From Rhodosorus marinus CCMP1338 (lineage: Eukaryota; Plantae; Rhodophyta), in NCBI GenBank assembly GCA_029953675.1, contig JAMWBK010000003.1, forward strand, positions 744,001 to 808,000: 64,000 nt of DNA. The letters run 5' to 3'. This document shows positions 1 through 40,550 of this stretch, piece after piece (positions within the stretch are counted from its first letter, which is position 1; every line of letters begins with the position of its first letter). The notes beneath the pieces are model-generated. The model saw only the letters and a list, made by a program, of their open reading frames with translations, had not been told where the DNA came from and made no database searches. The translations under genes and the position numbers were made by a program.

Positions 1-331
1 GCAGGGGACTGCCGCCTCCAGAAATGCGCAGCTTAGTAGGAGCAATCGACGGACTTACATTCCGGGAAACATTCTTCCCGGTGTGTCCCTGGGGTTGAGT
101 GTAACTTCAGAAGTGCGAAATAATGGCTACGGAAACGCACAGTTGTGGTCCAGCTATTCCAACGGTCCTCACACCCTCAATTTAGGTTACGCGAACGATG
201 CGGACGCCGTTCTACAGCAAGGGGGTGGGGGCGTTCCGTTCATCCGTTTGCAACCTTCGCTGAGGTTTGATATTGATGCGCCGTACATGTGCTCCGAGCT
301 TCAGAAGAGGCGACAAGGAGGGCGAGGATAA
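1..331 (+). CDS. Possible 3' end of a protein-coding gene entering from the left edge (unidentified)
   Basis: Frame is open from position 2 to TAA at 331 (QGTAASRNAQLSRSNRRTYIPGNILPGVSLGLSVTSEVRNNGYG...); no family recognised. Confidence 0.3.
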   Translation, partial: QGTAASRNAQLSRSNRRTYIPGNILPGVSLGLSVTSEVRNNGYGNAQLWSSYSNGPHTLNLGYANDADAVLQQGGGGVPFIRLQPSLRFDIDAPYMCSELQKRRQGGRG

Positions 332-1683
332 GCAGATTTGCGAACGAACGCTAACAAGATTTTGTATAAAAGATAGATGAAAAGTTTTGCCTGACGATCC
401 GTCAGATGTTGGAGGTTGGCCACATCTCCGCCTTGGAGGTCTCTTATCAAGTCTTCTCATTCAAAAATCCAGCGCTGCTCTGGTTCGTTTGCGCGCTTAC
501 AACTGCGCGGGTAGAGCCCGGGTTGACATACTTTTAAGGCTCTAGCGTCTGAAACCCCACGATGGTAGAAAACGCAGATTGAACGCGGGTTTCTGATCAC
601 CCCTTCCTCGCCGGCGCCTGCTTTCTCGTCTATGGTCTGCAATCGATTTTTTTGTATTCACGGAGCGCAATCTGGCTTTTGGAGTGCGAGAGATTGTAGC
701 GTCATCGCGCAGATCAAGCAAGTAAACCCTATTCAGTTTGCTCAAGCCTATATATCGATCCCTTCACGAACAAACTCCAAATCGGGTCTTCGGTGAAAGA
801 GTCTTGCTAATTTGCGAACGCCGTGCTCATGCTTTAAGAGCAGTAACAGCGCTTCCAATGTCTCAAGCGTTTGGGCTCTGTACAACAATGCCTTTCTCCG
901 CTAGAGTTCATTGTCATCATCATCACCACACACTCGACTATTCAGAGACACCCCAACCCCAAGAGGGGGGGGGGTTGGAAGTTGGGTGAAACATGATAGG
1001 GAAACGGGCCTCGAAAACTAAGCTGGCGGCGTCAGAGCACCACAGAAAAAATACTTCAGCGAATTGAGAAAGAACTCGAGTGATTGTCATCGCGTCCGCA
1101 AAAACAGCCCACGAAAAAGCCGATCCACACCAAAACTTTCGATCAACCCGAAAGGACCAATTCGAACCTCAAACGACAGGCGGGACAATATCCGCGTGTC
1201 ACAGTCGATTGCAGGGAGCTCACGTTTTCGTAAAAGTCTCCAGAGTACACATCCTCCTTCTGGCGACGCATCATTCCGGCAGTTGACGCCACGGCTCCCC
1301 ACCCCCTCCCCCAACGCCTGGCGACAGCCTGTCCCATGCCATTTTGACTGGAGAAGAAGAGGAAACGAACTGCTCATTGTCGGTGACAATGGGGGATAAG
1401 ATGTGGATGGATGTTTCGGCTTTGGGACGTGAGGGCTTGATGTTTACGTAAGATAATTTTCTCTGATAATCGCTGAGTCTGGTGTGAAAGGAGCTCTAGC
1501 CTGCAGAAGTACGCGCAACTTTTTGTACTTGTGGTAGAAGTGCTTGTTCGGGAAGGTTAGGATTTGGTTTGAACTAGGACGCCCCGAGAGGGGGAAAGGC
1601 GGGGGGGGTGTTGGGTACCTGAAGACCTGGCGGAAGACGAGGCTTTGGACGGCGGCAACTAGTAAAGGTGGGAGGTGGTTATC

Positions 1684-2289
1684 ATGATCATTCCCGTGCG
1701 TTGCTTCACGTGTGGCAAGGTATGTTTGGTGTGTTCCTACTTGTTTGAAAACCTTCAAGGGCATGGCGATCGTTGGAAATCCTGATGTACAGGGCCTATC
1801 ATCAAGCGGATTCGTGTGGAAGAGGAGCTTGGACGCAGCTTGTCTTAGGATCTAAATGTTTAAGGCTAAAAAGTCGGTGCTCAAAGTCATGTTTCTCGTA
1901 TTTTTTCTCTTTTGCTGTCTCTTTATCATGGGAATAGGTTGTCGGAAACAAATGGTATGCGTACTTGACTCTCCTGAGTGAAGAAAAGACGGAAGGGTGA
2001 GCTCTAGAATTACAACCGCCTTTTTGTCCCCTTGTGATTACTACTTAGCGAGCTCTGATGAAGCTTCACTGGCTCCCGACGGGGGATTGTGGACGTAGAG
2101 CATCCGAAGGCATGCGTCAGGGTCTGAACCGTTCTGCTCTTATTTATTATGTCCTCCATATTCGCTCTGACTAGGCAAGCGCTAGACTTACTTGGGCTGA
2201 CGAGATACTGCTGTAGAAGAATGGTTCTTACCCACGTTGATCTTATCGAGAAGCTACTTATGTACAACACTTATGAAGCCCGGGAGTAA
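1684..2289 (+). CDS. RPB10: RNA polymerase I/II/III common subunit RPB10 (RPABC5), 3 exons: 1684-1719, 1938-1996, 2175-2289
   Basis: Spliced translation [12 protein letters not shown]|[20 protein letters not shown]|[37 protein letters not shown]; CxxC and YCCRRM zinc motifs; GT-AG introns. Confidence 0.97.
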
Positions 2290-2319
2290 CTATACAGTAA
2301 ACGCATCCAATAATTGCTT

Positions 2320-3282
2320 TCAAACTTGTGTGTCTTTGAACCATTGGAGAGTGTCTTTCAATCCAGTTTCCAGTGAAACTGGCTGACCAAACTCTGGAAA
2401 TGCTTCCGCGAAATTTGAATCAACCACGAAGTCCGTGTCGAACATGTAGCTCATCTCCATTACCTCCCTAAGTGCGGGCATAAACAAGGACACAACGGAC
2501 TTCAAGAACCCTGGCATCTCCGATGTCGCTCCATTCTCAACACCTGCGAGCTTCGGAAAGTCCTCAAACTTTGCTGGTGGAGCGTTCGGAACGTGCCATG
2601 CTTTCCCCCATGCTTTCTCGTTCATTCCAGCAATCGCTAGAGCCTTTGCAAAATCGTCGATGTGGGTGACGGAATGAAGCTTATTCTTCCTCACCACCAC
2701 AGACGCTGATTTCCCCTTGGCCAGCTTTGAGAAGAACATGGAGCCGAGATGTGAATTCGTCACTCCGGGCCCATAAAAGTCGCTTGCACGAACCATTGCA
2801 GTCTTGCATCGCCCAGCTTTTTCAGCATCTTCAAGCATACGGCACAGCTGTGCTCTCAGAAAAGACTTCTTGTACTTGCCATTGAAATCGGAGGTGGCGT
2901 ACGGAAGCTCTGTCGTAACCGTCTTCGCGTCAATGACCTTCTCGGGGTCGTAACAGTACAGGTTGTCCGCCAGTACGAGCGTTGCTCCATTCCTCTCCGC
3001 AGCAGTGATACTGTTCCCTACAGTTTTTGGGAATCCCTCAGACCAGCTCTGGAAGGAGTATTTGAGACCAACGCAGTGGTAGATGACAGAAGCACCCTCG
3101 CACGCCTTCAAGAGCTCGCTCTCAACTGTCGCGTCAGCCGAAATGTGTGGCAAGTCCAACCCCTTGACGCTCTGGGATCGGCTCACTGTACGAACGCTTT
3201 TTCCCGCACCTTGCAGGTGCTTCGCCAACTTCACTCCCGACGGCCCGCTGGCCCCTACAACCACGTGCAGACTCATTATCAT
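2320..3282 (-). CDS. NAD-dependent epimerase/dehydratase, atypical SDR of bacterial type, intronless
   Basis: 320-aa ORF with N-terminal VVVGASGPSG Rossmann motif, LVLADNLYCY, VRASDFYGPG and AWHVPNAPP, as recalled for bacterial atypical SDR subgroup 3. Confidence 0.85.
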   Translation of the reverse strand: MIMSLHVVVGASGPSGVKLAKHLQGAGKSVRTVSRSQSVKGLDLPHISADATVESELLKACEGASVIYHCVGLKYSFQSWSEGFPKTVGNSITAAERNGATLVLADNLYCYDPEKVIDAKTVTTELPYATSDFNGKYKKSFLRAQLCRMLEDAEKAGRCKTAMVRASDFYGPGVTNSHLGSMFFSKLAKGKSASVVVRKNKLHSVTHIDDFAKALAIAGMNEKAWGKAWHVPNAPPAKFEDFPKLAGVENGATSEMPGFLKSVVSLFMPALREVMEMSYMFDTDFVVDSNFAEAFPEFGQPVSLETGLKDTLQWFKDTQV

Positions 3283-4099
3283 GCTCTTCGAACGACTCTC
3301 AGATAAACCTCCAGATCCACAGATCCTAACTACCTTACCCTACTACTCCTCGAGCAGGTCGTATCCTCGCGACATGCCCACTCGATTATAGCCACCTGCC
3401 GTTCACCTCCCAGCCTCGACAAACGCTAAAGTTGATAGCCTATCTTGCTGAACACGATCAATACCAAACAATATATCTCAACCGTAGCAGAAACCGAGAA
3501 GAAGATCCTTACCCCTTCCCGTTTTGCGGATAATTTAATTTCTTGCATTTAGAAAATAATTAAGAAGGTTTATGATGTAATATAGGAAAGGTCAATACTG
3601 GGGGCTTCGAGAGTTTAGAAGATATGCTGGAGTGTGCATGAAGTTTCGCGACCATGCAAGGATTCTTCTCTGAAAGAAAGTTGGCGGAAGGTCCACACTG
3701 TGTAATAGACTTGTCATGGCTTTCTCGTACAATGTCTTTCTAGCCTTCTGGCTCATCTTTCTTTGTTTTTTTTTCTGGAGTTGTTGGTGACACAGGGTTG
3801 TTGCCCCCTCCCCCCACCCCTTCCATCCAGTTCCCTTCTCACGCGGAAAAGGAGGATATGGCTCCGGCAAGCCTTATACAAACCGTACCATACGGAGCAG
3901 AGCAAAAACTGAGGCGACCGTGGTTGGTTTGATATTGAAATATGGATAACAGGTAAGATTGGAGTAAAAGCATTCCTCGTTCGTCACTTGTTTCACACTA
4001 TTCCCACCAGGAAACCCTCCTCCAACTCCCACGAAAACCTTAATCGCCGGGATTCAAACCAAAGTTGTATGTTTTGTGAATACTTTTTACAAAGTAATG

Positions 4100-4390
4100 T
4101 AGCACATCCAGGTAAACGGGAAAAAAAACAATTCTTGAATATTTCATATTCTTAATCCAGAACAGAATCGGATATGTTTTTTGATGTTTTAGCCATGGCG
4201 ATGTTAAAGACCTTTTTTGAAATTTTTTTATTAATACGAAAAACGGGTTTATTTGGACATCCAGATATCGACTCTAATTATTCAATATTTCATATTTCTA
4301 ATCGAGAATGGATTTTCGATATGAGTTTTTGAATGTTTTTCGACGGCTGAGGTGAATATATATTTTTGAAATTTGTGCAATAGATTTGTC
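4100..4390. repeat. Two degenerate tandem copies of a ~146-152 bp AT-rich unit
   Basis: ATTTCATATT at 4141 and 4287; CATCCAG near 4106 and 4258; similar downstream GATATG...TTTTTGA...TTTTTGAAATTT text. Confidence 0.5.
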
Positions 4391-4849
4391 ATTGTGCAGA
4401 AGTGGAAATTGGGATTGGATTTTGGCAAGGGGGGGATGTGCAACTATTTGTCAAAAGTATTCACAAAACATATAACTTGGGTATGACGACGAGGGGTTGT
4501 GCGGAGTTTGGAGGTAGCTTTTTGGTGACATGGGTTTGCTAGCGAGCTACAGCTGCAAGTGACGAACGAGGATGCTCTATTCCAATCTTAATTTTCTCGA
4601 GATCCCAAATGTTAACAAACGACACTCGCACACGGGGATGAGCGAGTACATATGTTGTTGCTGTTTTTTTTCTAACCGTTGTTGGAGGCTGTCAGTAGCG
4701 GAGCCACCACATTCGGCTGGATAAGTGGAGAAATCAGGGTCTTGCGTTTGTTAAGTATTTCGTAGAGGATCTTGTCAGCAACGCAACGCGCACCCAGCGT
4801 TTTTTTTCTCTGACCCTGTTCTCGGATTTCTTACGCGTCGATGGGGCTG

Positions 4850-5420
4850 TGGCATTGGCGCATAGTGAACCGACTTGACGAGTCGTGAGTTCACTCTGTG
4901 GATGGACAGCTTTTCGACAATTATGTCTCAACCTGTTCCCAATGACGCTACTCATCGTCCGGGCCTGTTTCAGGACGATGAAGATGGTGGGACGGCGTCA
5001 AGAATTTTTGAGCTCGTGGGAAACTGCGACGGTGTATCCAAAGATCTGCTTCCCTGTCAGTAGCGAGCTTTGGCTCGATGGGCAGGTTATTTCTCCCTGC
5101 CGTTCATCGAAACTGATGCATTGCGTTCTTGTTTGCGTTTCCACCAAGCATTATGGTGTGGCTCATACGGGTATTGAGCACTGATGCTGAACTGGAAACC
5201 TGGACCAATGCTTAGTTTGTGGATCCCAGCACTAAGTGATACCATCAACGGCGACTGAATCACGGCTCTGTGAGGTGTTAAGATGTTTCCCATTTGAGGC
5301 GGACGCCTCTGGACAGGGCTTCTGCTCTTGGGATTGAACTCTCAGCCAGAGTCCCGTCCATCGCAAACGGGTACGGGAAAGCTAGCTTCACTAGTGGAGT
5401 CTGCGTTCAAATGGGAACTT
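4850..5420 (+). mobile_element. Decayed Ty3/gypsy-like integrase fragment
   Basis: Frame of ORF 4885-5184 and beyond reads LWLDGQVISP...KHYGVAHTGIEH*...DQCLVC...VIP...EVLR, resembling the HHCC zinc region of gypsy integrases; several stops. Confidence 0.4.
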
Positions 5421-5549
5421 GAGCAGTTGAGAATATAGTTGAATCTGAAAAGCAAGCTTCCCATACGACCGGACAACGTTTCGTGAAAAGCTTTCAAAGC
5501 GTAGTTTACCACGACGCCTTTTCACCCCAAGTCACAGGTTATTCATGTC

Positions 5550-6200
5550 AAAGTTCAGTTTAAATAGCCTATATATACGATGGGATCTCAACTAATGGTA
5601 CTAGCAGAAGCAGCCGACGCAAAGCTAGGAGCAATAGCCGGCTCCGAAGTAGTCTGTCACTGCACGAAAATACGGAATGTGTCTCCTGAGCAAAGGTGTG
5701 CTTGCATATTATCAACATACACCAAGACCTGAAGCAAGAAAGAAGCTGGACTCCCGTCAGCCGGGAACGGGCATCCTACAAGGAACTACATATCGATCGG
5801 GTGGTAGCTAGCTGATGCCAACATAAAAGTCTGCCATACTAGCAAACAACCTAACCAGACGAAAAAAGCCATGTTAGATCTTCCTGCAGAGGCAAGCACA
5901 AAACATACCTCATCCGAAGAAATAAGTCGTCAAATACGTCAGACTTGCAAAATCCCTCAACACAATAAGTTTGTTTGTTTTTCAGACAGGGATAACTGTT
6001 TAGTTTTGCAATCTCATCCTCGTAAATACATTTGTCCGTTAAAAGTGAGAATAAAAACCACATCTCGCACTTAACAAAGCAGCAACCAAAAGTCCTTCCA
6101 GCAAACGGCACCTACCTGATGTGAAAATACACCTGCCAAAACACACACCACCTACCAGATCCTCAGGTTTCCGTCAAAGCTTCTCTTCACGAAACTATCG
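5550..6200 (-). ncRNA. Putative spliced non-coding snoRNA host transcript
   Basis: CAG|GTAGGT donor at 6115 and CTGCAG acceptor at 5884 bracket the snoRNA; a further TTCAG acceptor at 5729 has a CTGAC branch-like motif; no long ORF; GT-rich 5' region like the UTRs of neighbouring genes. Confidence 0.5.
5935..6024 (-). ncRNA. snR38: Box C/D snoRNA, snR38/SNORD1 homologue (predicted guide for LSU rRNA Gm2815, yeast numbering)
   Basis: TACG/CGTA terminal stem; C-like box AGGATGA (6020-6014); guide CAGTTATCCCTGT (5998-5986) directly followed by D' CTGA (5985-5982); D box CTGA (5942-5939); internal TTGCAAAA/TTTTGCAA stem; guide is the exact complement of rRNA ACAGGGAUAACUG. Confidence 0.88.
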
Positions 6201-6423
6201 AATGACATTTAACAGAGATCGCATGATTAGTATTCAAGGAGTCAATGACCATCGAGATCGGGGACTAGGCTAGCAACTATCCCCACCCATACCTCCCCCC
6301 GCACCCTCTTAGCAAGCAGTCCATTAGTCCACCTCCACCGGCGATCGCCATTTCCTTAAAAACCCATTAAAAACCGTCCATTTCATCAAACCGATCAAAA
6401 ATATATATATAAACAACATTTAT

Positions 6424-6716
6424 CTACTCTACCACTTCCCAAAATATTAACCAACAAAACTGCAACACGTGTTACCATAATCTTCATCAATTGGATAAAA
6501 TCTGAAATAGTGGATTACTCCAGAAAGTGAGTAATATCTAATTAAAAACTACCACGTGTTTTAATAATCTTCGTTTATTGGTCTAAATCTGTGGATTTGG
6601 AGAGATGGTAATCACTCTCGCTACTTTACTACTTTTAGAAAGTAACTAATTAATTTAATACACGTGTTGTGTAATTATGTTTTAATTGGTTAAAATGTGA
6701 TGAAGTGGAGAAGTAG
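6424..6716. repeat. Imperfect inverted-repeat element (MITE-like) containing three CACGTG G-boxes
   Basis: Left arm CTACTCTACCACTTC...TTAACCAACAAAAC...CAACACGTGT resembles the reverse complement of the right arm CTACTTCTCCACTTC...TTAACCAATTAAAAC...CAACACGTGT; CACGTG at 6466, 6553 and 6661. Confidence 0.55.
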
Positions 6717-6848
6717 TTTCGTATGGGGACGTCGAGGGTTTTTAGTTTTGGTTGGAATGGTCTTGAGGAAGACGGGGAATGCATGAAAAAAAAAGAGGAG
6801 AAAACGATCAAAATGGGATAATTTTGAAGGTTTCTTTTTGTGGTTTTT

Positions 6849-6878
6849 GGTGGTGGTGGTGGTGGTGGTGGTGGTGGT
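6849..6878. repeat. (GGT)10 microsatellite upstream of the PHR2-like gene
   Basis: Direct reading. Confidence 0.95.
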
Positions 6879-7100
6879 GAGAGTTTTTAGCTTTGTATGA
6901 ACGGGAGGGCTGTCTACGTCCTCTTTGTTTTATTTTTCCAGTTGTTTGGACGACTGAAGGATTTTGTTTTTCTTGTTCAGGAGGGTTTTCGAACAGGGCG
7001 TTAGAGCGGTGTTGTTGCTTTTTTTCTTCCTTTTTTTTGTGGGGGGAGGGGAGAGAGTGGGGTTTGTGTTTGTTTGGGAGTAATCGACAAAACGGGTGAA

Positions 7101-9044
7101 ATGACTGAGGAAGCATTTGTCCCGTCAGTGAATGGAGATCGATCGGGAGCAGGATCATCTCTGGCTCCAAAGAAACATTCTCTGTCGTAAGTTGTTTCCT
7201 TTGAATATTTGTCATACTCTGCGTCTGTGGGTTTTTGAGGGAGGAGGCTTGTAGTTTCCCCTGTGAACGGGTTTGTTTGAGTTGGTCTTTTAAGGCCCAA
7301 AATTTTGAACTGTGTTTGTGTCAAGCAGTAGAATGTGTCCCTTTTTGATTCTAGTTCCTGAACTGCTTTGTCTTGGTGTTGCAATCACAGGGATGGAACT
7401 AGCAAGATTCTCGTGGTGGAAACAAAACATGGCTGTTCATTCCGAACGTCGAAAATGTCAGAGCACACGCCTAAACGGCATCTTCGAAGAGAGAACGTCG
7501 ATCAGTCTGCGAAAACGGCGTGTCCGAGCATCGGCAAGGTGGGGAATTATTGGACACAATGCTTCAGCTTTTAAAAGGCCCTGACTTGGCGATCTAGCAT
7601 TGAAATCTGAAGGTCTCAATCCGTTTCGCGCCTCTCAACAGACCGGTAAGACGCTGATGTGGTTTCGGAATGATTTAAGACTAAGCGCTAACAAGACCCT
7701 TCAGAAAGCGGTCAAAGAATCGTCAGTCCTTCTGCCGGTCTTCTTTTTCGACCCAGACCTGTTTCAGGCTGATGTATTAGAACAAACTAGGACAAGTGAG
7801 CATCCGCTATCGTTCATTGCCGCACGCCATGATTACAATTCTTGAAAATCCGGCCCATTCACCGTTGCGTTTTCCGGATTGTGTTGTTCAATAGGCCCAT
7901 CAGATGTGATGTTCCTGTTGGAGTCTGTGGCTGCTCTCCGAGAAGAGCTGAGAAAGATCGACTCGGACCTGTACATACAGCGCGGAAGCCCAGAGCTGAT
8001 GATCCCAGCCCTTGTCGACCAGTTTGAGTTTTCAACTGTAGTGTTTCAGAAAGGCTTTAGTCGCCTCGACGTTGAGGCTGAAGCTGCTCTCGAGCAGGTA
8101 TGCGTCGTGCTTATTTCAATGGATTTCGATTTAGAAGTTTGACGCTGAAACTAACCGATTTTCTTCTCCTGCGCTGCTTTTTACCAGGTAATGAATGAAC
8201 GTCATCCTTCAGTATCTTTGAAGCCAGTCTTTGGAAACATGCTCTTCGATCCGGACCAGAGCCCGTTCGAGGTGCAGAATTGCCCACCTCTATTCTCGGA
8301 TTTCCGCGATCTTTTGGAAGGAGCTGGAACCATAGAGGTAGTCTCTGACAAGGTTAAAGCTATCCCGCGCCTTCCTCTCTTGTAAGTTGCGAAGCATGCA
8401 ATGAAATCAATTCAGAAGCGGAGCAGTGGCCGAAAAGATATTTTGGTACTGACTACTCTACCAACTTTTTTACTGAACTTGTGTGCGTTATGACTATCAG
8501 GTACGAACGCTCCGATGACTTACCGACCGTCGAATCGATTAGTGGGGTCAAGTACAGCGGTGAAAATAGGAAGCAGAAAGCTGGTGAAGAAGCAGCAATT
8601 GCGGAAGTGACATCATTACTTCGTGAGATGCAGATCGAGCTTCAATCCGAGAATGTGCTATTCGGTTCAAAGTATCAGAACCAGAAAGACGACGAACTGA
8701 TACCACTTATCAAGCCATGGCTGAAAACTGGAGCGATAAGCCCAGCGCAAATCTTCTCGCTCTGTGACGAAATACATCCGCGGGTGAGCTTTCGAACCAA
8801 ACATGACGAGTTTCCTTTGCGCCTTGCTCTTAGGCTTTTGGTCTAGAATTTTCCTACTGATGAGATCAAAGCCCCTTGCTTCGGTGAACAGATTACGGAG
8901 AGCGTTGTCTATATGGATCTAGTCTACGCCGAATTTTCGAAGCTCTCCAACCTGAGGAGACTTGCGGAAGAGTTGGCGGAAGAGGAGGCAGTAGGATTGA
9001 ACACACCCGCGGAAGGTAGCAAGCTTCTCGCAACAGCGGGCTGA
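7101..9044 (+). CDS. PHR2: Photolyase/cryptochrome family protein of PHR2 type (antenna domain, truncated FAD domain), ~7 exons
   Basis: Spliced frames give LMWFRNDLRLSAN, LLPVFFFDP, VMFLLESVAALREELRK, FGNMLFDPDQSPF, AGEEAAIAEV, IKPWLKTGAISPAQIF; the protein ends soon after (TGA 9042-9044). Confidence 0.85.
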
Positions 9045-9139
9045 GCGGCGTTTCTTTTGAGTAAGTTCTTTTTTGATTTTTTTTTCGTAGGATGTACATA
9101 TTAATAGATAGGTATTCAAGGCATGGTTTTTCCTTTGTC

Positions 9140-12100
9140 CTATTCCCGGGGCTTGTCTCCCTTGCGTGCTAGAGTGCTGTTTGTCTTATCGGCAACTGGA
9201 ACAGGTCCGTCCTTGTTGAGTGTTACACCCTTTTCATGATCTAGCCCGGACTTTATCCACTGCTTCGCCGTGAAGGAAGCAGTCCATGGTTCTAGAAGGG
9301 ATTCAACCACCACCTTTTCCAATCTCCAATCCTAAGATAGATACATTTGGAAGCTCGTTAGACGCCGCTGTCAATAGGATGCTAGATATGAACGTGGAAA
9401 CTGCAAGCTTAGGCTTACGAGCGATAGTCCGCTATTATAGTGGCCTATGGTCATGCTTTTGATTGGAGCCAGTGACGACTCAATTAGGATACAGAAGACG
9501 TCCACAGACCCAGCAGAGAAGCTGTGCTTCCTCCTGTTCAAGTACATTACCGGGGAAGAACCTCCGTCAACACCTTCGAAAGTTATCCAGACCTCCCCGT
9601 CGGTCCCCGAGCCCATGTGATCGCTTGTCTCAACGCTAATGAGCACCGGACAATGCTTTTCCTTAGGGCAACCATCTTCTTTCTTGCGTTTCTCCGGAGA
9701 AGATTCTGCGTAGGTTTTGTAGAAATTAGAGAGGAGGTCAGCAGCTCTGTTAGTGAAGGAAAAATATCGTCTTCCAACGTGAGCTATGCCTATGAACACT
9801 GACCTACGGAGTATAGAGCGAGCCCTCTGCTGGTGCTCGCATCATTTCCGTGCCTTATCTTCTCCACTAGAGCTTCATGTCCGAGACGAATCTCCATTGC
9901 ATTCTTTTGGATTGTGTCGAACACCTCCGAGCTGAGCTTCCGAATCGCCTGCAGCAACTGGATATTTTCAGCCTTCTCAGAGTCTTCGTTCCTTTGACGG
10001 AAATTGTGCTTCATTCTCTGCACTCTGTCGGTCAGTAGTTGATTGATTGGGTTGATGAGCAATTCGCTAGGCGCGCGGGATAAGGTTGGTGTCAGACACC
10101 GATATCCAACCCAGCACCGCGCCCAAACCGGTTTGTCATCATGTTTGTCCATGATCAACGGGATCCAGAGCTCGCGCATCCTCATACTTTGTCCTCCTAT
10201 TTTGGCCGTGAGACGTATATCAGTTAGCAAGCGGCTCGGAGTACAGCCTCCAATAAGCGGTGTGATAAGGACGGACGTACTCGTCAATTGTAAAAGTGCT
10301 CTCCCCAGAATAAGATCCGACGCAAGGAGCTCCTTGCCCAGTACCAAGATGTTCAACAAATCCGTCGACGGGTCATTGACAGGGAATGTGAAATGCTCAT
10401 CCCAAACCGGTTGTTGAGTATCCTTCTGGACCTTGGTTACACGAGTTGTTGGTCCACAAATGATCTCGCATTGGAAACTGTGCTCAGAGGGCCATTGCGT
10501 TGATTCAAGAAAATCAACCTGCAGCGAACCAGAAGATAAAACCCCCAGCATGAGATACGCCATTCACGTGGGCTCCGACAATGAAGCGATGACCCTTCCA
10601 GCCTGCCACTACTTACCACCCATTCACCTTCTACAAGAGTATCTCGTGCTGCCTCGGAAGAAGCTTCCGCCGCAGGGACCGGGTCATTGTCCGGTTGTTG
10701 CGAAGGTACGCCTCGTTCAGGTGGTGCAAACGTTCCTTGATTTGACCCTCCTTCCATTGCACGAGCTTGATTCAAAGAGCGTACATCGAGTTCCTCACTG
10801 GAACCGACATATTCGTCGCTTGCAAACTTTTCACCCCGTTCATCATTGGACTCGAGTGCTTGCTCTTTTGCAGATGCCGTTCCTCCCACGTCCTCGCTGT
10901 ACTGCGGACTACTCCTACGCCGATGTCGGGAGCGTCTGTAAAAGTGCTCGGAATGGCTGCTCAGCCGGTGTTCGTTGTTGTCAGGAGAATTTGCACTCTT
11001 CTCTGAACTATGCCGATGTAGAGAGGGCCTTCGATGGCCCTCTAAATGTCCACTGAGCCGATGCAACACTTTTCCGTGAGAGTGGTTGCTATTTTCCGAG
11101 CAACCCTCCTCGTTTCTCGGTGAATTATTCCCATGCTGGCCAGGCTGATGCTCGGGCACCTGCTCACTTCCCTCTGGATCATGCTTATGCCCAGTGCTAC
11201 GTCTGTGTTGCCGACGTTGTCCCGTTTGAGCCGCTCTTTCATCGGGATGCTCTGGGTCCGCGCCGTACTTGCCGTTTCGAACGCGATTTGTGACCTTCTT
11301 CACACGATCAGCTACTGGTCTCCGTTTTCGATCGTCATCTTGACGCGCGAACTTCACGAAGGCCATCTGCACCCGCACCATTCCAACGCCTTCATCTGCC
11401 TCGCCGGAACACGTTCCCTTCAAATGCACCCACACAGGTACTTTCGCGGCCTAGTGAATCGGTAAATGGAGGCGATTAAATTACGGTTTCGCCTCTAGTC
11501 AAAGTGGCCGAACGAGCAAGGCAAGGGGCACAGGTAGCCCAACTCATACCTCCTGAATTTCCTCAATGGATATCCACGCCGATCCAACGACCTTTTCTCC
11601 GAAAACGAGGTTTTCCACGGCGTTTCCATATCCCGCAAGTAGCTGAACGCAGAGAAACCTTTCGTTCTTCGATACAGGAACATACAATCTCTCGTTGAAG
11701 ATAGCATCTCTACCCGTGTCGGCGTCGTGACCATCACGGTCGTGGTCCGTATCTCGGGATTCCTCACCAACCCGGAGCCTTACTATCGGGTGAAAGTTTT
11801 GTGACATTTGTTGCCCTCCCAAGTCAATCCCTTCTATAACCTTGGCGGAGATAAAACCTGGGGAGTCATCTTCTGATTCGTTCCTCATTTCTTTTTGCAC
11901 GCGGGCGTCAAAGTTCAAATGGCTCTGACTTGGACGAGAATCTATGATTCCCCCGACGGCTCTTAGCAGCTCGAGCTGTAAGTAAGTATGCGAGATTGTC
12001 TCAGCTTGAGCTTTGAAACTGCTAACAATATTGCTGAGGAAGCTCTTTGTTCGCGACCTCTCTTTCCGCAGCTCGTCGCTCTCAGCTGCATTATTAGTTC

Positions 12101-13383
12101 GCAGAGTTATGGAGACCGCATTTGGGAAACTCATGAGTTCGGAAAGAAGAAAGTACACGAGGTCGTTGAACCATTCTACAATCTTGTTGCCTCCGAGCAG
12201 GTCGATTCCAGACGCGAATGGGACTACCGAAAGCTTAACTATAGGCCTCCCTACGATGCTGATCGACATCTTTTCAAGGTTGATCCTGTCCTCGCATAAA
12301 GTCAAAACCTGAAGTAAACACGCGCAAGAAAAGGAAGCATAGAAACACGGTAAGGAAAAGTCTCAGAGGTAGATTGGCTCCGGCTGGCAGACCAACTGCT
12401 GCGATCTAAAAACAAATCAACAGAAGCCCTGAAATCAAAAGCTGAAACAATTGGCTTCCTCTAAACTAGATTCAGTTCCGATAACGAATTGCATCTCCTC
12501 TGCTCATTCGCGCAAACAAAAAATTCCTCTTGCACCACAATGAGAGCCAGCAGTCCAGAGTCCAGCACTTTCCGCCTGGCTCTACGCAAAAGATTGAACC
12601 CGGTTCTCTCGCGTTCTTGTCTGATGCTATTGGAGCTTCGGTCGAAGTGCTTGTCTCCAATAAGGACTAGATGGCAAGACGGTCTCTAAGGAATTGTTAA
12701 CTCAAACAACATAAACCAGCTCCCATAAAGCGGGCAAATGGTCACTACTTTCAAGAATCGCGGATAGGGAGGTGATGATCGGATTTTGGAGTACTTACGA
12801 ATCTAGTACGTGCTTTGATGGAAAGATTGCTCGCTTTCAGTACATGAGGTCCGTGTGTTAGGCCAGTACGTAGAGTTACCTGGTTATCCCTGTCATGTTT
12901 TTGAGATAGAATTTTAGAAGTGACTCTGAAACCGAACATGAGTTGGTGTTGTCCTTACGGGGAAATCCATTCTAGCAGACAGTCCACGATCAAAGTTCGA
13001 GGGTCCGGATTGGAAAACGTCTTGACTGAAACAACGTAGGGAGGCTCAGTGCCGATGCTAATGTCACTTACTGCAAGGTAGGGGAACACAGCCGGTTTTG
13101 CTTCGACCACCATCGGGTAGATCAGCTTGAGAATCTCATCCTCTAGATTTGTAGCCCATTGCGACCAGAACTTGAATAAAAGAACCGCAATCCATATCAC
13201 AGATTCCTCTTTCTCGTTCTTCAACACGTCTCCTTCATCCGCGTCTTGCTCCTCGTCGAGTACTAACCGCGCAGAGTTTTTCCTGAAGAAAGTTGCGTCC
13301 AAAACTTTAATAGCTGCGTAGGCTACTGCAACGGGGAAAAGAAATGAGCTGCTCGCCGCCTTCCAAAGAAACCCCAGATTCAT
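9140..13383 (-). CDS. Extended-synaptotagmin/tricalbin-like protein: TM + SMP + C2 + disordered linker + C2 + PLAT, multi-exon
   Basis: SMP-like LAVSDISIGTEPPYVVSVKT and LVYFLLSELMSFPNAVSI; C2-like HPIVRLRVG...AIFNERLYVPV and TQQPVWDEHFTFPV; PLAT-like VETSDHMGSGTDGEVWITFEG...FSAGSVDVF and FTAKQWI. Confidence 0.78.
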
Positions 13384-13799
13384 AACGCCCAACAAAAAGA
13401 TTTCCGCATTTAAATCAGTAGGGAAAAAGCAAAAGCAGAGAAGACGATCCCTACGCCCGACGATAAACTCCGCTCGCTCTCAGTGCACAAGTCTCCAAAT
13501 CTTCTCAAGCGATTATCTCCCATTTCCGGCACCAATAGCTGAGCAAGGAAGCCGTAGTAATCTCGAAACTCAAAGAATGGCTAGATTGAAAGCTCAATTT
13601 TTACCGCATGAACGTGAACACCTCCTGATTCTACTAGGACGTTCAAGTGTTGCTACCCTTCCTCAAACCCTTACGATTCTCTAACAAACCAGGCAGTAGA
13701 CAGAAGATCCAAAAGTCGAATGTCGGAAACTTATACGTCCTCCCAGCTTGGTCTACCGGATGCCACTGCCTAACTCACAGTAAAGTCAACTGACTTTCG

Positions 13800-14500
13800 T
13801 TTCACTGGATCCTACCGGCCAAGGTATTGAGGCGCATGGTACCTTGAAACTCAACAACTCGTCCACTCCAATATCTCGTTTTCCAATGAATTCTAATGGC
13901 CAAGGTAGTGTTGCGCATGGTCCTCCGAAGATAAAAAAATAGCGTCCAGCAACGTCTCGTTTTCCAATGAATTCTAATGGCCAAGGTGACGTCGCGCATT
14001 TTTCTCCGAAGAACAAAAACAACCGTTCACCAACATATTTTTTTTTAATGAATTGTAATGGCCAAGGTAGTGTAGCGCCTGATATTCTAGGAACAAACAC
14101 AACCTTTCATCTATATGTCGTTTTACAATGAATTCTAATGGCCAAGGTAGTGTGTATAGCATGATACCCCCAAAGAACAAACACAACCGTTCACCAATAT
14201 ATCGTTTTACAATGAATTCTAAGGGCCTGGTGGTGACCAATGCTACGAAGTCGTGAAAGTAATTACTGAGCCTTGTCTCCTGTTTGACGAATTTCAATGG
14301 GAGAGGTCAGATGGTTCATATCACCCTGCGGAATGCAAATATTCAACAATCTGTTTTTTTTTTTGGAATGAATTCGTAAAGGCCAAACTAGCATGCCGAT
14401 TGTTACCCTTTTGCTTGGCAACACGCCCTATTGTGTATCCTTTTTTATCAATGAATTGTAATGGCCAAAGCTGCTCGGCTGATGATGATATCCGTTCTTG
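13800..14500. repeat. Tandem array of ~9 degenerate ~81-bp units with conserved core CAATGAATTCTAATGGCCAAGG
   Basis: Core at 13885, 13966, 14047, 14127, 14211, 14367 and 14450, with degenerate copies near 13804 and 14290. Confidence 0.9.
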
Positions 14501-17827: not shown

Positions 17828-19362
17828 CTTGCCGTACTTTGTTTACTCAAAACGTCCTCGAGCCCCTCCCAACCCTCTCCAGGAAAAAAAACCACAGTCC
17901 CTTTACGGAACCCTCTGAATCGCCCTCTCCCCCTCGGCCTATCTGCTCAAACTACCACACACACACACACACCCAAAAGAACTCCCAAAACTCTGACCAA
18001 AACAGCAATTCTCAGACCCTTCCAAGCCCCACTACGCCCAAAACAATCTTCTTCAACCTTTCCAGCTCCTCCCTCATGTCCTCATAAAAACCAAAACAAA
18101 CCAAAAGAAAAATTAGCAGCCCCTCAAACTATAAACAGTCGTACACAAACCTCTTCATGGACTCTCTTACATCTCCACCGAAAACATGATCCTCGTTCGT
18201 TCCTCCCCAACCCCGAAAAGGTTAACCCAAGTCAACTAGGGATGCAAAACATCCCCCGCACCCCACCAGAGCAGCCTCAACAGTCTGTCTACCAGAGCAC
18301 GTCCTTCTAAGAACACCCAACGAGGAAGAAGATCTTTTGTAAAATCAAAAAACGCCATCATCTCCGAAACTGAACAGGAAACGATCTTCTAAAACGCCGA
18401 CGCGCATGATCAGTACTATAAGGGTGGTGTTGTTATCTCCTGAACACGGAGTTGTTGTTGAGGACGAGGATAGTTGAGTCAAGGCAACCCTCTTTCACTC
18501 TTTTTCAGTGAAGACGATAAACCCTATCTGTTTCTCACGACGGATTTCTGTTATCCGAAGCTCACTACAAAAACCGCAGATGTTGTGGTTTGTCGACCAC
18601 TTTGGGCGGTTGTTGTCGATGACCACGATAGTTGAGTTCTCTTCACCGAAATCTCTGCGGTTGCGAAAGTAGAAACTTCCGGACGGTACTCAGGCTTTTG
18701 GTGAGGGAGATGGTTCACTAGGACGTCCAATCTTTATACCTCTTGTTCGTCAGGACGTGGCTTGTCAGTTGCAGACTTCAGTGATCGTTAAGGTTTTGGC
18801 AGATCTAGAGAGGCACAGGTTTATGCTCACATCGAATAAGTAGAATCCTCACTGAAGCGTAGACGGAGAGCGTTTCCGGGTAATACAGTACCTGCCTCCT
18901 CATTGATAAGGCTTCCAAAAAACCTTGTGGATGAATGGACAGTAGGACAAGTAGACAATACCCGCAGTTGGAGGAGCGGTGAACGGTGTGAACTTTATAT
19001 GAAGCTGGCGGTGGATGAATTGGCAATCCGGCTTGTGGGTCAGAAGCTCCCGTCAAAGAATAGACTGATCCGGGACGAAAACGTGAGCTACAGACAGAAG
19101 TTTATGGACAGCAGTCGATTTCAGTTTGGTTTTTAACAAGAGTGCTGGAGTGCTGGACGGGAGTCCCGCTTGTTGAGGAATGGAAAAAAATAAGAACTCA
19201 TCAAGAAATGACTAAGTCAAGACTTTTCGAGTTAGACCTCGACGGAGGTTTTGTCTCATGACCGCAGGCGACGAGTAAGCAAGTCTTTGCTGAGGTCAAA
19301 AGTTGTTGCGGCGAGGGGCTGTGGGCTCGCGGTCGCAGGTTGCGAGCTTAGTAGGTTGTGTC

Positions 19363-35389: not shown

Positions 35390-36733
35390 TCAGCTGTTGA
35401 TATCCATAATCGCGGCCGGATGTAAGAAACTTGGAGCGTCCTTTGGGTGCGCAGTTTCCCCTTGTTCTCCTGGAAGTCGAAGGAGTCTAATAGACAGAGG
35501 CTTGTTCCACCGCATGGCTAAAGCGCCGACGTCCATCACGACCTTCGAGATCTCTTCCGCCGTGAGCGAATGTGATATTGGGATGGTATCTAGCCCAACG
35601 CCACAGACCGACGATAGTTGCAGAAGGGACGAAAGCCCTAGCGAAGCATCGTTCACGCGCTTACAAAGGGTGATGTCTTCGAGCACGGGGAGCATAACTC
35701 CAGCGTAGCCGACCGTTTTCACATTGAGCGTCCTCAGCGCACTGCTGATTGCTGCAACGACCGAAATGGATCCCACAGAACCTATCGGCCGGTTTTTTAA
35801 GCTGATTTCAATCGCCTTTCCGATGCTAGTCTTGCCATCTATACAAGGATTCGCAGACGGATCGATGCCGCAGTATGTTGCTACAAGTTTGCGTGGCTCT
35901 GTACAAGTCTTCAAAGTCGTCACCACAATCTCTTCTATCTTCATGAGGTGCGGCTCCAGCAGTTTCTTGACGTTGTTATGAAGCTCTGAAGGGCACGTCG
36001 AGATTTCTGCGGCTTGCTCAAGGATGTCAGAGTTTTCAGTTGCAATAGAAATCAGGAAAGCGGACTCCTGAGACGTTGAGGTAGGAACTTCTCGGGATGC
36101 GACCGGCAGGAAAGGAATATTGTCAGGCATCGGTCCACAGGATACACAGAAATTAAAGCCCTGTCGCCAATCCAATGTGCTTATCACCTCGGAAAGCTTC
36201 AGCGCATGATCTTCGTCCGGAAGCTGCTGGTGTACTGCACCGTGCCTCAAGTGCGCCGAGCATGAGATCCTTGGAGATATCTCGATAAATCTCGGAATCC
36301 ATTTCAAGTCTTCATCGCTCATCGCTCTTCCGAGAGAGATGGCATCGATATCGAGCTCTTCGAGCTCACGTGCCAGGGACTCCAGATCGACGCTTTGTAC
36401 CCACCTCCCGAAGGGGTCAGTCCCCAGTCGCACAAAATCAGTCGGAACGCCTTGATCTTCTAGCGCGGCCTTGATTTGGACCCCAGTCCAGTTTGCATCT
36501 CGTAACCTCTGCCTCAGCAATGACCAGTCCTCACTGCCACAAAGCCCGACTGTCACAGCCCTCACTCTCATCTTGGAAGAAGGACAGACCGTTCTTATGG
36601 CTCTTTTTTGCCGATGATCGAAACAGGTAGTAGTTGTCTCCGTTCGACAAGCATCCAGTTGTTCCTCATCGATGGAGAGCAAGATTTTCTTCCTCCCGGT
36701 TGATAAACCCGACAGCTCGAAAACTCTTTCCAT
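35390..36733 (-). CDS. DUF711 (UPF0210) family protein, intronless; true start may be at MRVRAVTVGL
   Basis: VGYAGVMLPVLED, SSVCGVGLDTIP, DVGALAMRWNKPLSIRL are recalled DUF711 motifs. Confidence 0.85.
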   Translation of the reverse strand: MERVFELSGLSTGRKKILLSIDEEQLDACRTETTTTCFDHRQKRAIRTVCPSSKMRVRAVTVGLCGSEDWSLLRQRLRDANWTGVQIKAALEDQGVPTDFVRLGTDPFGRWVQSVDLESLARELEELDIDAISLGRAMSDEDLKWIPRFIEISPRISCSAHLRHGAVHQQLPDEDHALKLSEVISTLDWRQGFNFCVSCGPMPDNIPFLPVASREVPTSTSQESAFLISIATENSDILEQAAEISTCPSELHNNVKKLLEPHLMKIEEIVVTTLKTCTEPRKLVATYCGIDPSANPCIDGKTSIGKAIEISLKNRPIGSVGSISVVAAISSALRTLNVKTVGYAGVMLPVLEDITLCKRVNDASLGLSSLLQLSSVCGVGLDTIPISHSLTAEEISKVVMDVGALAMRWNKPLSIRLLRLPGEQGETAHPKDAPSFLHPAAIMDINS

Positions 36734-39496: not shown

Positions 39497-40550
39497 TTAG
39501 TTGCATTTTTCATCGAGTACGTTCACAGCTTCAACTTCCGCTGCTAGAGCGTCTCCAGGGTTAACAGGCGTATCCTCTTCCTCCTGTTCAGGTACTTCCC
39601 GCACCCCGTCAGCTGCGGCGTTGTTTTCAGAGCCAGTCGCATCCGTCTCCTTTGAGCTTTGATCTGCTTCCTCAGCTTGCAAAGCATTTACTGAGCTCCC
39701 CTGCTCGCCTTCTTCCTCTTTTTTCTTAATTAATTCTGGGTGGATGTTGGAAATGTTGAGATAGGCCTCCACGAGCTCTTCAGTGGTGGCTTGCTCCCCA
39801 ACCAGATCCACCAGGTGCTGGCGGAACCTGGTGACGTGAGCTGGGTAGGCCTCGTAGAACTTGTTCATATTTACACGGAGCGTATCTTCAATGAATCCCC
39901 TGGTGGTTTTGGAATGCCGAATACCCAACAAGCGACTATGTCAGATTCAATTCCGCTGAGGGGGCGGGAGGTTATGGGGGAAACATACGATACGAAAGGC
40001 AAATTCACCTCTGTTTTCCCTTTGACGACGTGCACACACTTCTCAGGGTTCTCCGGGTGTTCAAGAAGGCTCAGAGTTCCAGTTGTTTTGATGCTCTCTG
40101 TTAAGAAGGTCGGCGTTACTTTGTAGTCCAGTCTATACTTATCCACGTCCCGATTCCAAGACTGTTCATCCAAAACCTCCAGTATAGTCTCTCCCAAAAG
40201 CGCCCGAACAATGTCCGGAATCTCAACCGTTCGTGGTATGTATGCACACTTCAGGTGAACGGATCCATCCGGATCGTCCCATTCCGCTTCTGCGTCCATT
40301 TTGTACAGTGCTTTGTCCTCTACTAAGAAATCAAAGAAGGCTTTCGTCGCCTTGACCTTGTCAAATGTAAAGAGAGAACCCAAGACCGAACAATCCGCCT
40401 CTCAGAAACCAGACCCAAACGCAAACTTCAATCACACCAAACACAAAGGGAAAAGTGTGGCAAAAAAATAGTTTTCCAAGGAGTCCTCACCTTCCAGTAG
40501 GACTCGCGGTCAAAGTCCAATTCACATACAACCTCGAATTCCAGCACCAT
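39497..40550 (-). CDS. START/SRPBCC-fold (DUF2505-like) protein with acidic tail, 3 exons
   Basis: MVLEFEVVCELDFDRESYWK|...IPDIVRALLG...YKVTPTFLTESIKTTGTLSL...VKGKTEVNLPFV|...FIEDTLRVNMNKFY resembles the DUF2505 pattern. Confidence 0.62.

Follow-up and report, generated by a model that had tools for sequence, protein, structure and literature searches.

An unannotated box C/D snoRNA gene of the snoR38 family predicted in the red alga Rhodosorus marinus, with a possible second guide for 5.8S rRNA

Box C/D RNPs, composed of Snu13, Nop56, Nop58 and fibrillarin, 2'-O-methylate the nucleotide pairing with guide position 5, counted upstream from box D or D'. For the snoR38 family of guides, Rfam entry RF00213 has been equated with AtsnoR38Y of Arabidopsis, human snR38A (SNORD1) and yeast snR38, and its row is marked X in all three blast-mapped-hit columns of the table of C/D snoRNA modification targets of the last eukaryotic common ancestor (LECA) (PMC3511168). 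These snoRNAs share one site in the LSU rRNA, known as Gm2815 in yeast, as Gm2816 in Arabidopsis (guided by AtsnoR38Y and mapped by RiboMeth-seq) and as Gm4392 in human (PMC8583080 Table 1). The yeast member resides in an intron of TEF4 and the human members reside in introns of SNHG16. From the nucleomorph of Guillardia theta, GtNM-R10 has been described as a homologue of SNORD1/snoR38 whose D' guide is directed to the corresponding LSU G (PMC6461891); because this nucleomorph is derived from a red alga, the snoR38 guide was already known from the red lineage. A catalogue of red-algal nuclear snoRNAs was not found in the literature that we searched.

In this study, we analyzed a 64-kb stretch of Rhodosorus marinus DNA (JAMWBK010000003.1:744001-808000, assembly GCA_029953675.1), referred to here as the window, in which contig position equals window position plus 744,000. 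An original prediction had placed at 5935-6024 an intronic box C/D snoRNA of the snR38/SNORD1 type, of red-algal origin and missed by annotation. The organism is R. marinus, as the supposed origin implied, and no gene is called at the snoRNA. A cmscan search of the whole window with Rfam 15 matched RF00213 at 5932-6027 (minus strand) with 49.9 bits, exceeding the gathering score of 45 and thereby bearing out the assigned type. This alignment, the very Infernal/Rfam comparison that the prediction had put forward as a check, runs end to end over the model (positions 1-91 of 91), with E = 2.4e-5 for the 64 kb window and E = 5.2e-6 for a 14 kb segment. The 96-nt minus-strand stretch 6027-5932 reads AUUUACGAGGAUGAGAUUGCAAAACUAAACAGUUAUCCCUGUCUGAAAAACAAACAAACUUAUUGUGUUGAGGGAUUUUGCAAGUCUGACGUAUUU. 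All the features that had been listed within 5935-6024 are found there; their strand, on which the prediction was silent, is the minus strand. From 5' to 3', the gene and its elements are:

5932..6027, minus strand: whole snoRNA gene by the bounds of Rfam RF00213, with a stem-bounded core at 5935-6024
6024-6021, minus strand: 5' arm of the terminal stem, UACG, pairing with CGUA; recovered by the box C/D scan and present in the minimum free energy (MFE) fold
6020-6014, minus strand: box C in the variant form AGGAUGA (consensus RUGAUGA; U2 replaced by G, GA dinucleotides kept)
6011-6004, minus strand: 5' arm of the internal stem, UUGCAAAA, a perfect complement of 5952-5945
5998-5986, minus strand: D' guide of 13 nt, CAGUUAUCCCUGU, directly abutting box D' and conserved in the Rfam consensus
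5985-5982, minus strand: box D', CUGA, perfect
5963-5957, minus strand: degenerate box C', GUGUUGA, with 1 mismatch in the UGAUGA core; aligned to UGauGA of the model
5956-5943, minus strand: D spacer of 14 nt, GGGAUUUUGCAAGU, exactly filling the distance from C' to D; candidate second guide
5952-5945, minus strand: 3' arm of the internal stem, UUUUGCAA, lying within the D spacer
5942-5939, minus strand: box D, CUGA, perfect
5938-5935, minus strand: 3' arm of the terminal stem, CGUA, forming a 4-bp stem with UACG

The terminal stem of 4 bp (UACG/CGUA) directly adjoins boxes C and D. Degenerate C' boxes are usual in eukaryotes, and box variants such as AGGAUGA are common among working snoRNAs. 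The internal 8-bp stem (-7.8 kcal/mol) is present in the MFE fold; a perfect stem of at least 8 bp also arises in 141/2000 shuffles of the 96-mer, which places the internal stem alone within chance. The fold of the whole molecule is within chance as well (z = -0.94), which is what one expects of a box C/D RNA. The signal rests on the boxes and the guide rather than on the fold.

RF00213 is the sole Rfam match in the window at gathering thresholds, and no second match appears at E<=1 in 1-14000 or in the 21-kb locus L001. With up to 2 mismatches permitted, the window has a single occurrence of the 17-mer formed by guide and D', and 0/100 dinucleotide-preserving shuffles contain this 17-mer; no second copy of guide plus D' was found in the 64 kb. 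Neither Rfam (1-14000; L001) nor the box C/D scan shows a snoRNA cluster or polycistron near 5935-6024, and scans of viral contigs for rDNA or snoR38 homologues were empty. Run loosely, the box C/D scan yields four weak box-plus-stem candidates in the window (18006-18091, 36194-36539, 40065-40178 (-)) with non-consensus C boxes and without Rfam support, which are probably due to chance.

Every sequence-level feature by which membership of RF00213 was judged is present and none is missing, so that a well-known family gains a new, previously unannotated member. Judged from its sequence, 5935-6024 (minus strand) is a genuine but ordinary snoRNA gene of the ancient snR38/SNORD1/snoR38 family, and it very probably encodes a box C/D snoRNA guiding the predicted methylation of a G in the peptidyl-transferase loop.

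The targets of this snoRNA were sought on surrogate rRNA, namely eukaryotic rDNA contigs present as contaminants in prokaryotic assemblies (at least 120 loci), and the Rfam scan of the 64-kb window shows no rDNA. Two surrogate units, L013 and L024, have complete SSU, 5.8S and LSU genes according to Rfam; all three of their rRNAs were scanned, with a Watson-Crick pair required at guide position 5. Both the LSU and the 5.8S target described below are thus located on the rRNA of other eukaryotes, not on that of R. marinus itself. The surrogates are an observation in their own right: at least 120 contigs (L003-L122) of 'prokaryotic' GTDB species-representative assemblies bear eukaryotic LSU rDNA, a contamination of bacterial genomes or MAGs, and some of them, such as L013 (Motilimonas pumila assembly) and L024 (Streptomyces mutabilis JCM 4400), hold complete 18S-5.8S-25S units.

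In both surrogate units the best match of the D' guide is the LSU segment ACAGGGAUAACUG, with 13 Watson-Crick pairs from position 1 and a duplex energy of -22.4 kcal/mol. The 13-nt perfect LSU complement directly before CTGA, noticed beforehand in the letters of the locus, is thus recovered on the surrogate rRNA. The runner-up sites have runs of 10-11 pairs including 3 G.U and score 8.5-9.5, compared to 13 for the LSU site, and at least 120 rDNA contigs of eukaryotes contain the pattern that includes this site. At position 5 of the D' guide (window 5990), the rRNA partner is the second G of GGG in ACAGGGAUAACUG; in the plant-type LSU of L013 this is nucleotide 2818, matching Gm2816 of Arabidopsis. 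The prediction that the D+5 rule points to the second G of GGG, equivalent to yeast G2815, agrees with both the rRNA scan and the published tables. This GGG is part of GGGAUAAC in LSU domain V, and GGGAUAAC corresponds to E. coli 2445-2452, in the peptidyl-transferase loop. The consensus of RF00213 contains ACAGUUAUCCCUGUCUGA, and the D' guide is consequently the conserved core of the family. Following the box C/D mechanism, the RNA would guide a methyl group to the second G of GGGAUAAC, within the peptidyl-transferase loop of the 25S/28S rRNA, and the 25S rRNA of R. marinus would be expected to carry ACAGGGATAACTG as target segment.

The D spacer offers a less conventional match. When SSU, 5.8S and LSU are scanned, its best rRNA match is located in the 5.8S rRNA, at AAUUGCAGAAUCCC in L013 and at AAUUGCAGAAUUCC in L024, and among 33 rDNA contigs with a recognisable 5.8S this site is the top D-spacer match over the whole contig in 24. 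On the surrogate 5.8S rRNAs the pairing comprises 12 contiguous pairs (positions 3-14) with 1-2 G.U, one of them at position 8, and a mismatch at position 2; the partner segment is AAUUGCAGAAUYCC, and the quality of the match varies with whether the 5.8S of the alga has UCCC, UUCC or UUCA there. Spacer position 5 (window 5947) faces the G of AAUUGCAG, which is G74 of the plant-type 5.8S as delimited by Rfam. With an offset of 5 nt, G74 becomes Arabidopsis G79, and positions 47 and 78 are then occupied by A and U, respectively. Arabidopsis 5.8S rRNA carries Am47, pseudouridine 78 and Gm79, the last of which corresponds to human Gm75 and has no listed yeast equivalent (PMC8583080, PMC8351944). 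Shuffled D spacers match rRNA equally well in 88/5000 cases for L013 and 173/5000 for L024, a modest significance (p 0.018-0.035) for a resemblance that had been noticed before it was tested. Depending on the 5.8S variant, the duplex reaches -12.8 to -19.3 kcal/mol, compared to -7.8 kcal/mol for the internal stem.

Because its best rRNA match is the 5.8S Gm75/Gm79 site, the D spacer, with the stem arm that it contains, possibly serves as a guide besides being structural. The internal 8-bp stem of the original prediction is therefore retained as a pairing, while its role is put in doubt by its overlap with a D spacer that matches 5.8S rRNA and possibly acts as a second guide. We give close to an even chance to the D spacer being a guide for the 5.8S G equivalent to Gm79/Gm75, and a chance slightly short of even to the full reading, in which a single red-algal snoRNA would methylate both the G of the 25S peptidyl-transferase loop and the 5.8S Gm75/Gm79 equivalent. 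The internal stem would then be a weak self-pairing (-7.8 kcal/mol) that is displaced by binding of the 5.8S target (-13 to -19 kcal/mol), and the 5.8S rRNA of R. marinus would be expected to read AATTGCAGAATCCC, or to be a variant with at least 11 pairs to GGGAUUUUGCAAGU. A metagenome scan for a 5.8S perfectly matching the D spacer returned one plant-like contig (L002), which is uninformative on red algae. This contig (Ga0123341_1040365, 1-1193) holds a plant-like 5.8S with substitutions, including GCAG to GCAA, beside a poorly scoring gapped SSU match, and looks like a decayed rDNA copy.

The same spacer may be explained without a second target. The molecule would be a single-guide snoR38 snoRNA, in which the D-spacer stem is structural and holds the C/D motif together and the 5.8S match is a coincidence. 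The stem is indeed perfect over 8 bp and part of the MFE fold, the RF00213 consensus shows no conserved D-side guide, the 5.8S match holds one mismatch and 1-2 G.U, and 1.8-3.5% of the shuffled spacers do equally well on rRNA; moreover, an alternative reading of C' as UUGAGGG leaves a D spacer of only 11 nt. Against this stands that the stem is within chance and much weaker than the 5.8S duplex, and that position 5 coincides exactly with a methylation site that plants and human share, which contributes an extra factor of about 50-fold over the shuffle test. This explanation is a serious competitor, whose chance we likewise place just under one half. A different doubt concerns the activity of the gene as a whole, which could be a decayed, non-functional copy (a snoRNA pseudogene) with the functional snoR38 located elsewhere in the genome. 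The non-consensus box C AGGAUGA, the degenerate C', the shortness of the terminal stem and a margin of only 5 bits over the threshold would fit such decay, yet the 13-nt guide and boxes D' and D are perfect, box C retains its GA dinucleotides and the 64-kb window has no second copy, making a pseudogene quite unlikely. The short length of the element, and nothing else, speaks for a chance resemblance or an antisense rDNA insert, which we regard as hardly credible given the E-value of 2.4e-5 for the full model and the absence of guide plus D' from the 100 shuffles. An antisense rDNA fragment was rejected because the rRNA complementarity ends after 13 nt, where the flanks are boxes and not rRNA.

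The snoRNA lies within a 3.8-kb gap (3283-7100) that has no called gene in the gene calls for this assembly. The neighbouring genes and the candidate splice sites around the snoRNA are:

2320-3282, minus strand: epimerase gene (320-aa ORF) by gene call, downstream of the snoRNA on the same strand
5884..5886, minus strand: candidate 3' splice site, pyrimidine-rich ...cucugCAG, from a pattern scan, 47 nt downstream of the snoRNA; speculative
6110..6115, minus strand: candidate 5' splice site, cag/GUAGGU, from a pattern scan, 88 nt upstream of the snoRNA; speculative
7101-9044, plus strand: DNA-photolyase gene by gene call

Ten ORFs of the gap (3.3-7.2 kb, both strands) contain no Pfam domain, and on this ground a protein-coding host in the gap was rejected. 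The reading frames around the snoRNA are all closed, and exact look-ups in public assemblies of the three ORFs that overlap or flank it returned no transcript contig. The word 'intronic' in the original prediction is therefore unproven: no called gene spans the snoRNA, the gap ORFs lack Pfam matches and GT/AG sites occur at chance frequency. The genome average is about 1 gene per 3.7 kb, and the gap could hold an unannotated non-coding host transcript.

The candidate GT-AG pair (6115 + 5884) would enclose an intron of 232 nt. Its size and site type are similar to those of five putative photolyase introns read by eye, which have GTAAGT, GTGAGC or GTATGC sites and lengths of about 90-450 nt. Strings resembling 5' splice sites number 9 in about 1 kb near the snoRNA, versus about 4 expected by chance, which we treat as roughly chance density, and at such a density the pair is not evidence for an intron. 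A non-coding host is nevertheless plausible, given that the family members of yeast and human lie in introns. Excision of the snoRNA from an intron of about 232 nt in an unannotated, apparently non-coding host transcript is put forward tentatively, at somewhat less than an even chance; only remotely possible is that the epimerase gene, which lies downstream on the same strand, has a very long 5'-UTR intron containing the snoRNA. Alternatively, the locus may be an independent Pol II mono-cistronic snoRNA gene whose ends are trimmed from a short precursor, as holds for the mature ends of most yeast snoRNAs. Such a unit is in line with the lack of a called gene across the snoRNA, with flanks devoid of coding potential and with splice-like strings at about chance density, and an A/T-rich TTTTTAT is located at 6057-6051, 24-30 nt upstream of the 5' end. 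This string is not a canonical TATA box, however, the yeast and human relatives are intronic, and a well-formed cag/GTAGGT ... pyrimidine-CAG pair flanks the gene at a typical intron size. The independent unit is thus also a tentative proposal that falls short of an even chance, and we consider it and intronic origin about equally likely.

Other elements of the region deserve mention by themselves. Between the photolyase start (7101, plus strand) and the snoRNA, three palindromic CACGTG cores in the context of AACACGTG lie within about 200 nt (6464-6668). The window has five matches to AACACGTG, with 1.6 expected for its whole length, and 4 of the 5 fall in 6464-6668; a (TA)n run is found beside the cluster, near 6400-6412. 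The stretch 6464-6668 may act as a promoter of G-box type, possibly in both directions; one reading is light control of the photolyase gene. Just upstream of the photolyase gene, a (CAC)n microsatellite at 6830-6870 (minus strand) gives rise to a spurious poly-His ORF (6808-7215, minus strand). Farther away, at 13817-14227, an 81-nt unit is tandemly repeated about 5 times (72-76% matches), with LPWPLEFI-like translations recurring in minus-strand ORFs.

To a specialist, membership of the family is in itself unsurprising. The value for annotation is that a previously unannotated R. marinus locus becomes a clean anchor for a red-algal snoRNA catalogue, and that Rhodophyta proper joins the lineages carrying a snoRNA family that is traced to the last eukaryotic common ancestor. 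By implication, the Gm of the peptidyl-transferase centre would be conserved in Rhodophyta. The putative second guide towards 5.8S rRNA is the sole element that goes beyond routine homology. If the dual guide is true, it would illustrate, on a small scale but clearly, how guides are recombined or shuffled between snoRNA families of LECA age, and the 5.8S Gm75/Gm79 methylation site would extend to Rhodophyta.

The comparison with the described systems summarizes what is shared and what sets the R. marinus gene apart. Saccharomyces cerevisiae snR38 (RF00213) has the same box C/D organization, the same antisense element upstream of D' and the same LSU target, Gm2815. It is embedded in an intron of the protein-coding gene TEF4, whereas the R. 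marinus gene has no annotated host, and the latter further differs by its box C AGGAUGA and by a D spacer matching a 5.8S site without a listed yeast equivalent. Human SNORD1A/B/C (snR38A-C) belong to the same RF00213 family and target 28S Gm4392 (4362 in the old numbering); their three paralogues occupy consecutive introns of SNHG16, in contrast to the single copy in 64 kb of R. marinus, but SNHG16 is a non-coding host, and such an arrangement agrees best with the ORF-free surroundings seen here. GtNM-R10, which we liken to the R. marinus snoRNA by its description, is encoded in a reduced nucleomorph and has extra predicted targets in the LSU, not in the 5.8S (PMC6461891). For the 5.8S side, the relevant systems are SNORD96A, the predicted guide of human Gm75, and snoR39BY, the guide of Arabidopsis Gm79; to their 5.8S segment the D spacer is complementary, its position 5 facing the G that they address. 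They have no sequence-family relationship with the R. marinus snoRNA, and neither family is matched by Rfam at E<=1 in 1-14000; with RF00213 as the only family matched, we claim at most a shared 5.8S target and not membership. In Arabidopsis, AtsnoR38Y (At3gCDbox100.1 / At5gCDbox100.2) is of the same family as the R. marinus gene and targets 25S Gm2816 (2805 in the old numbering), as mapped by RiboMeth-seq, but 5.8S Gm79 is served by the separate snoR39BY, which also guides 25S Gm814 (PMC8583080).
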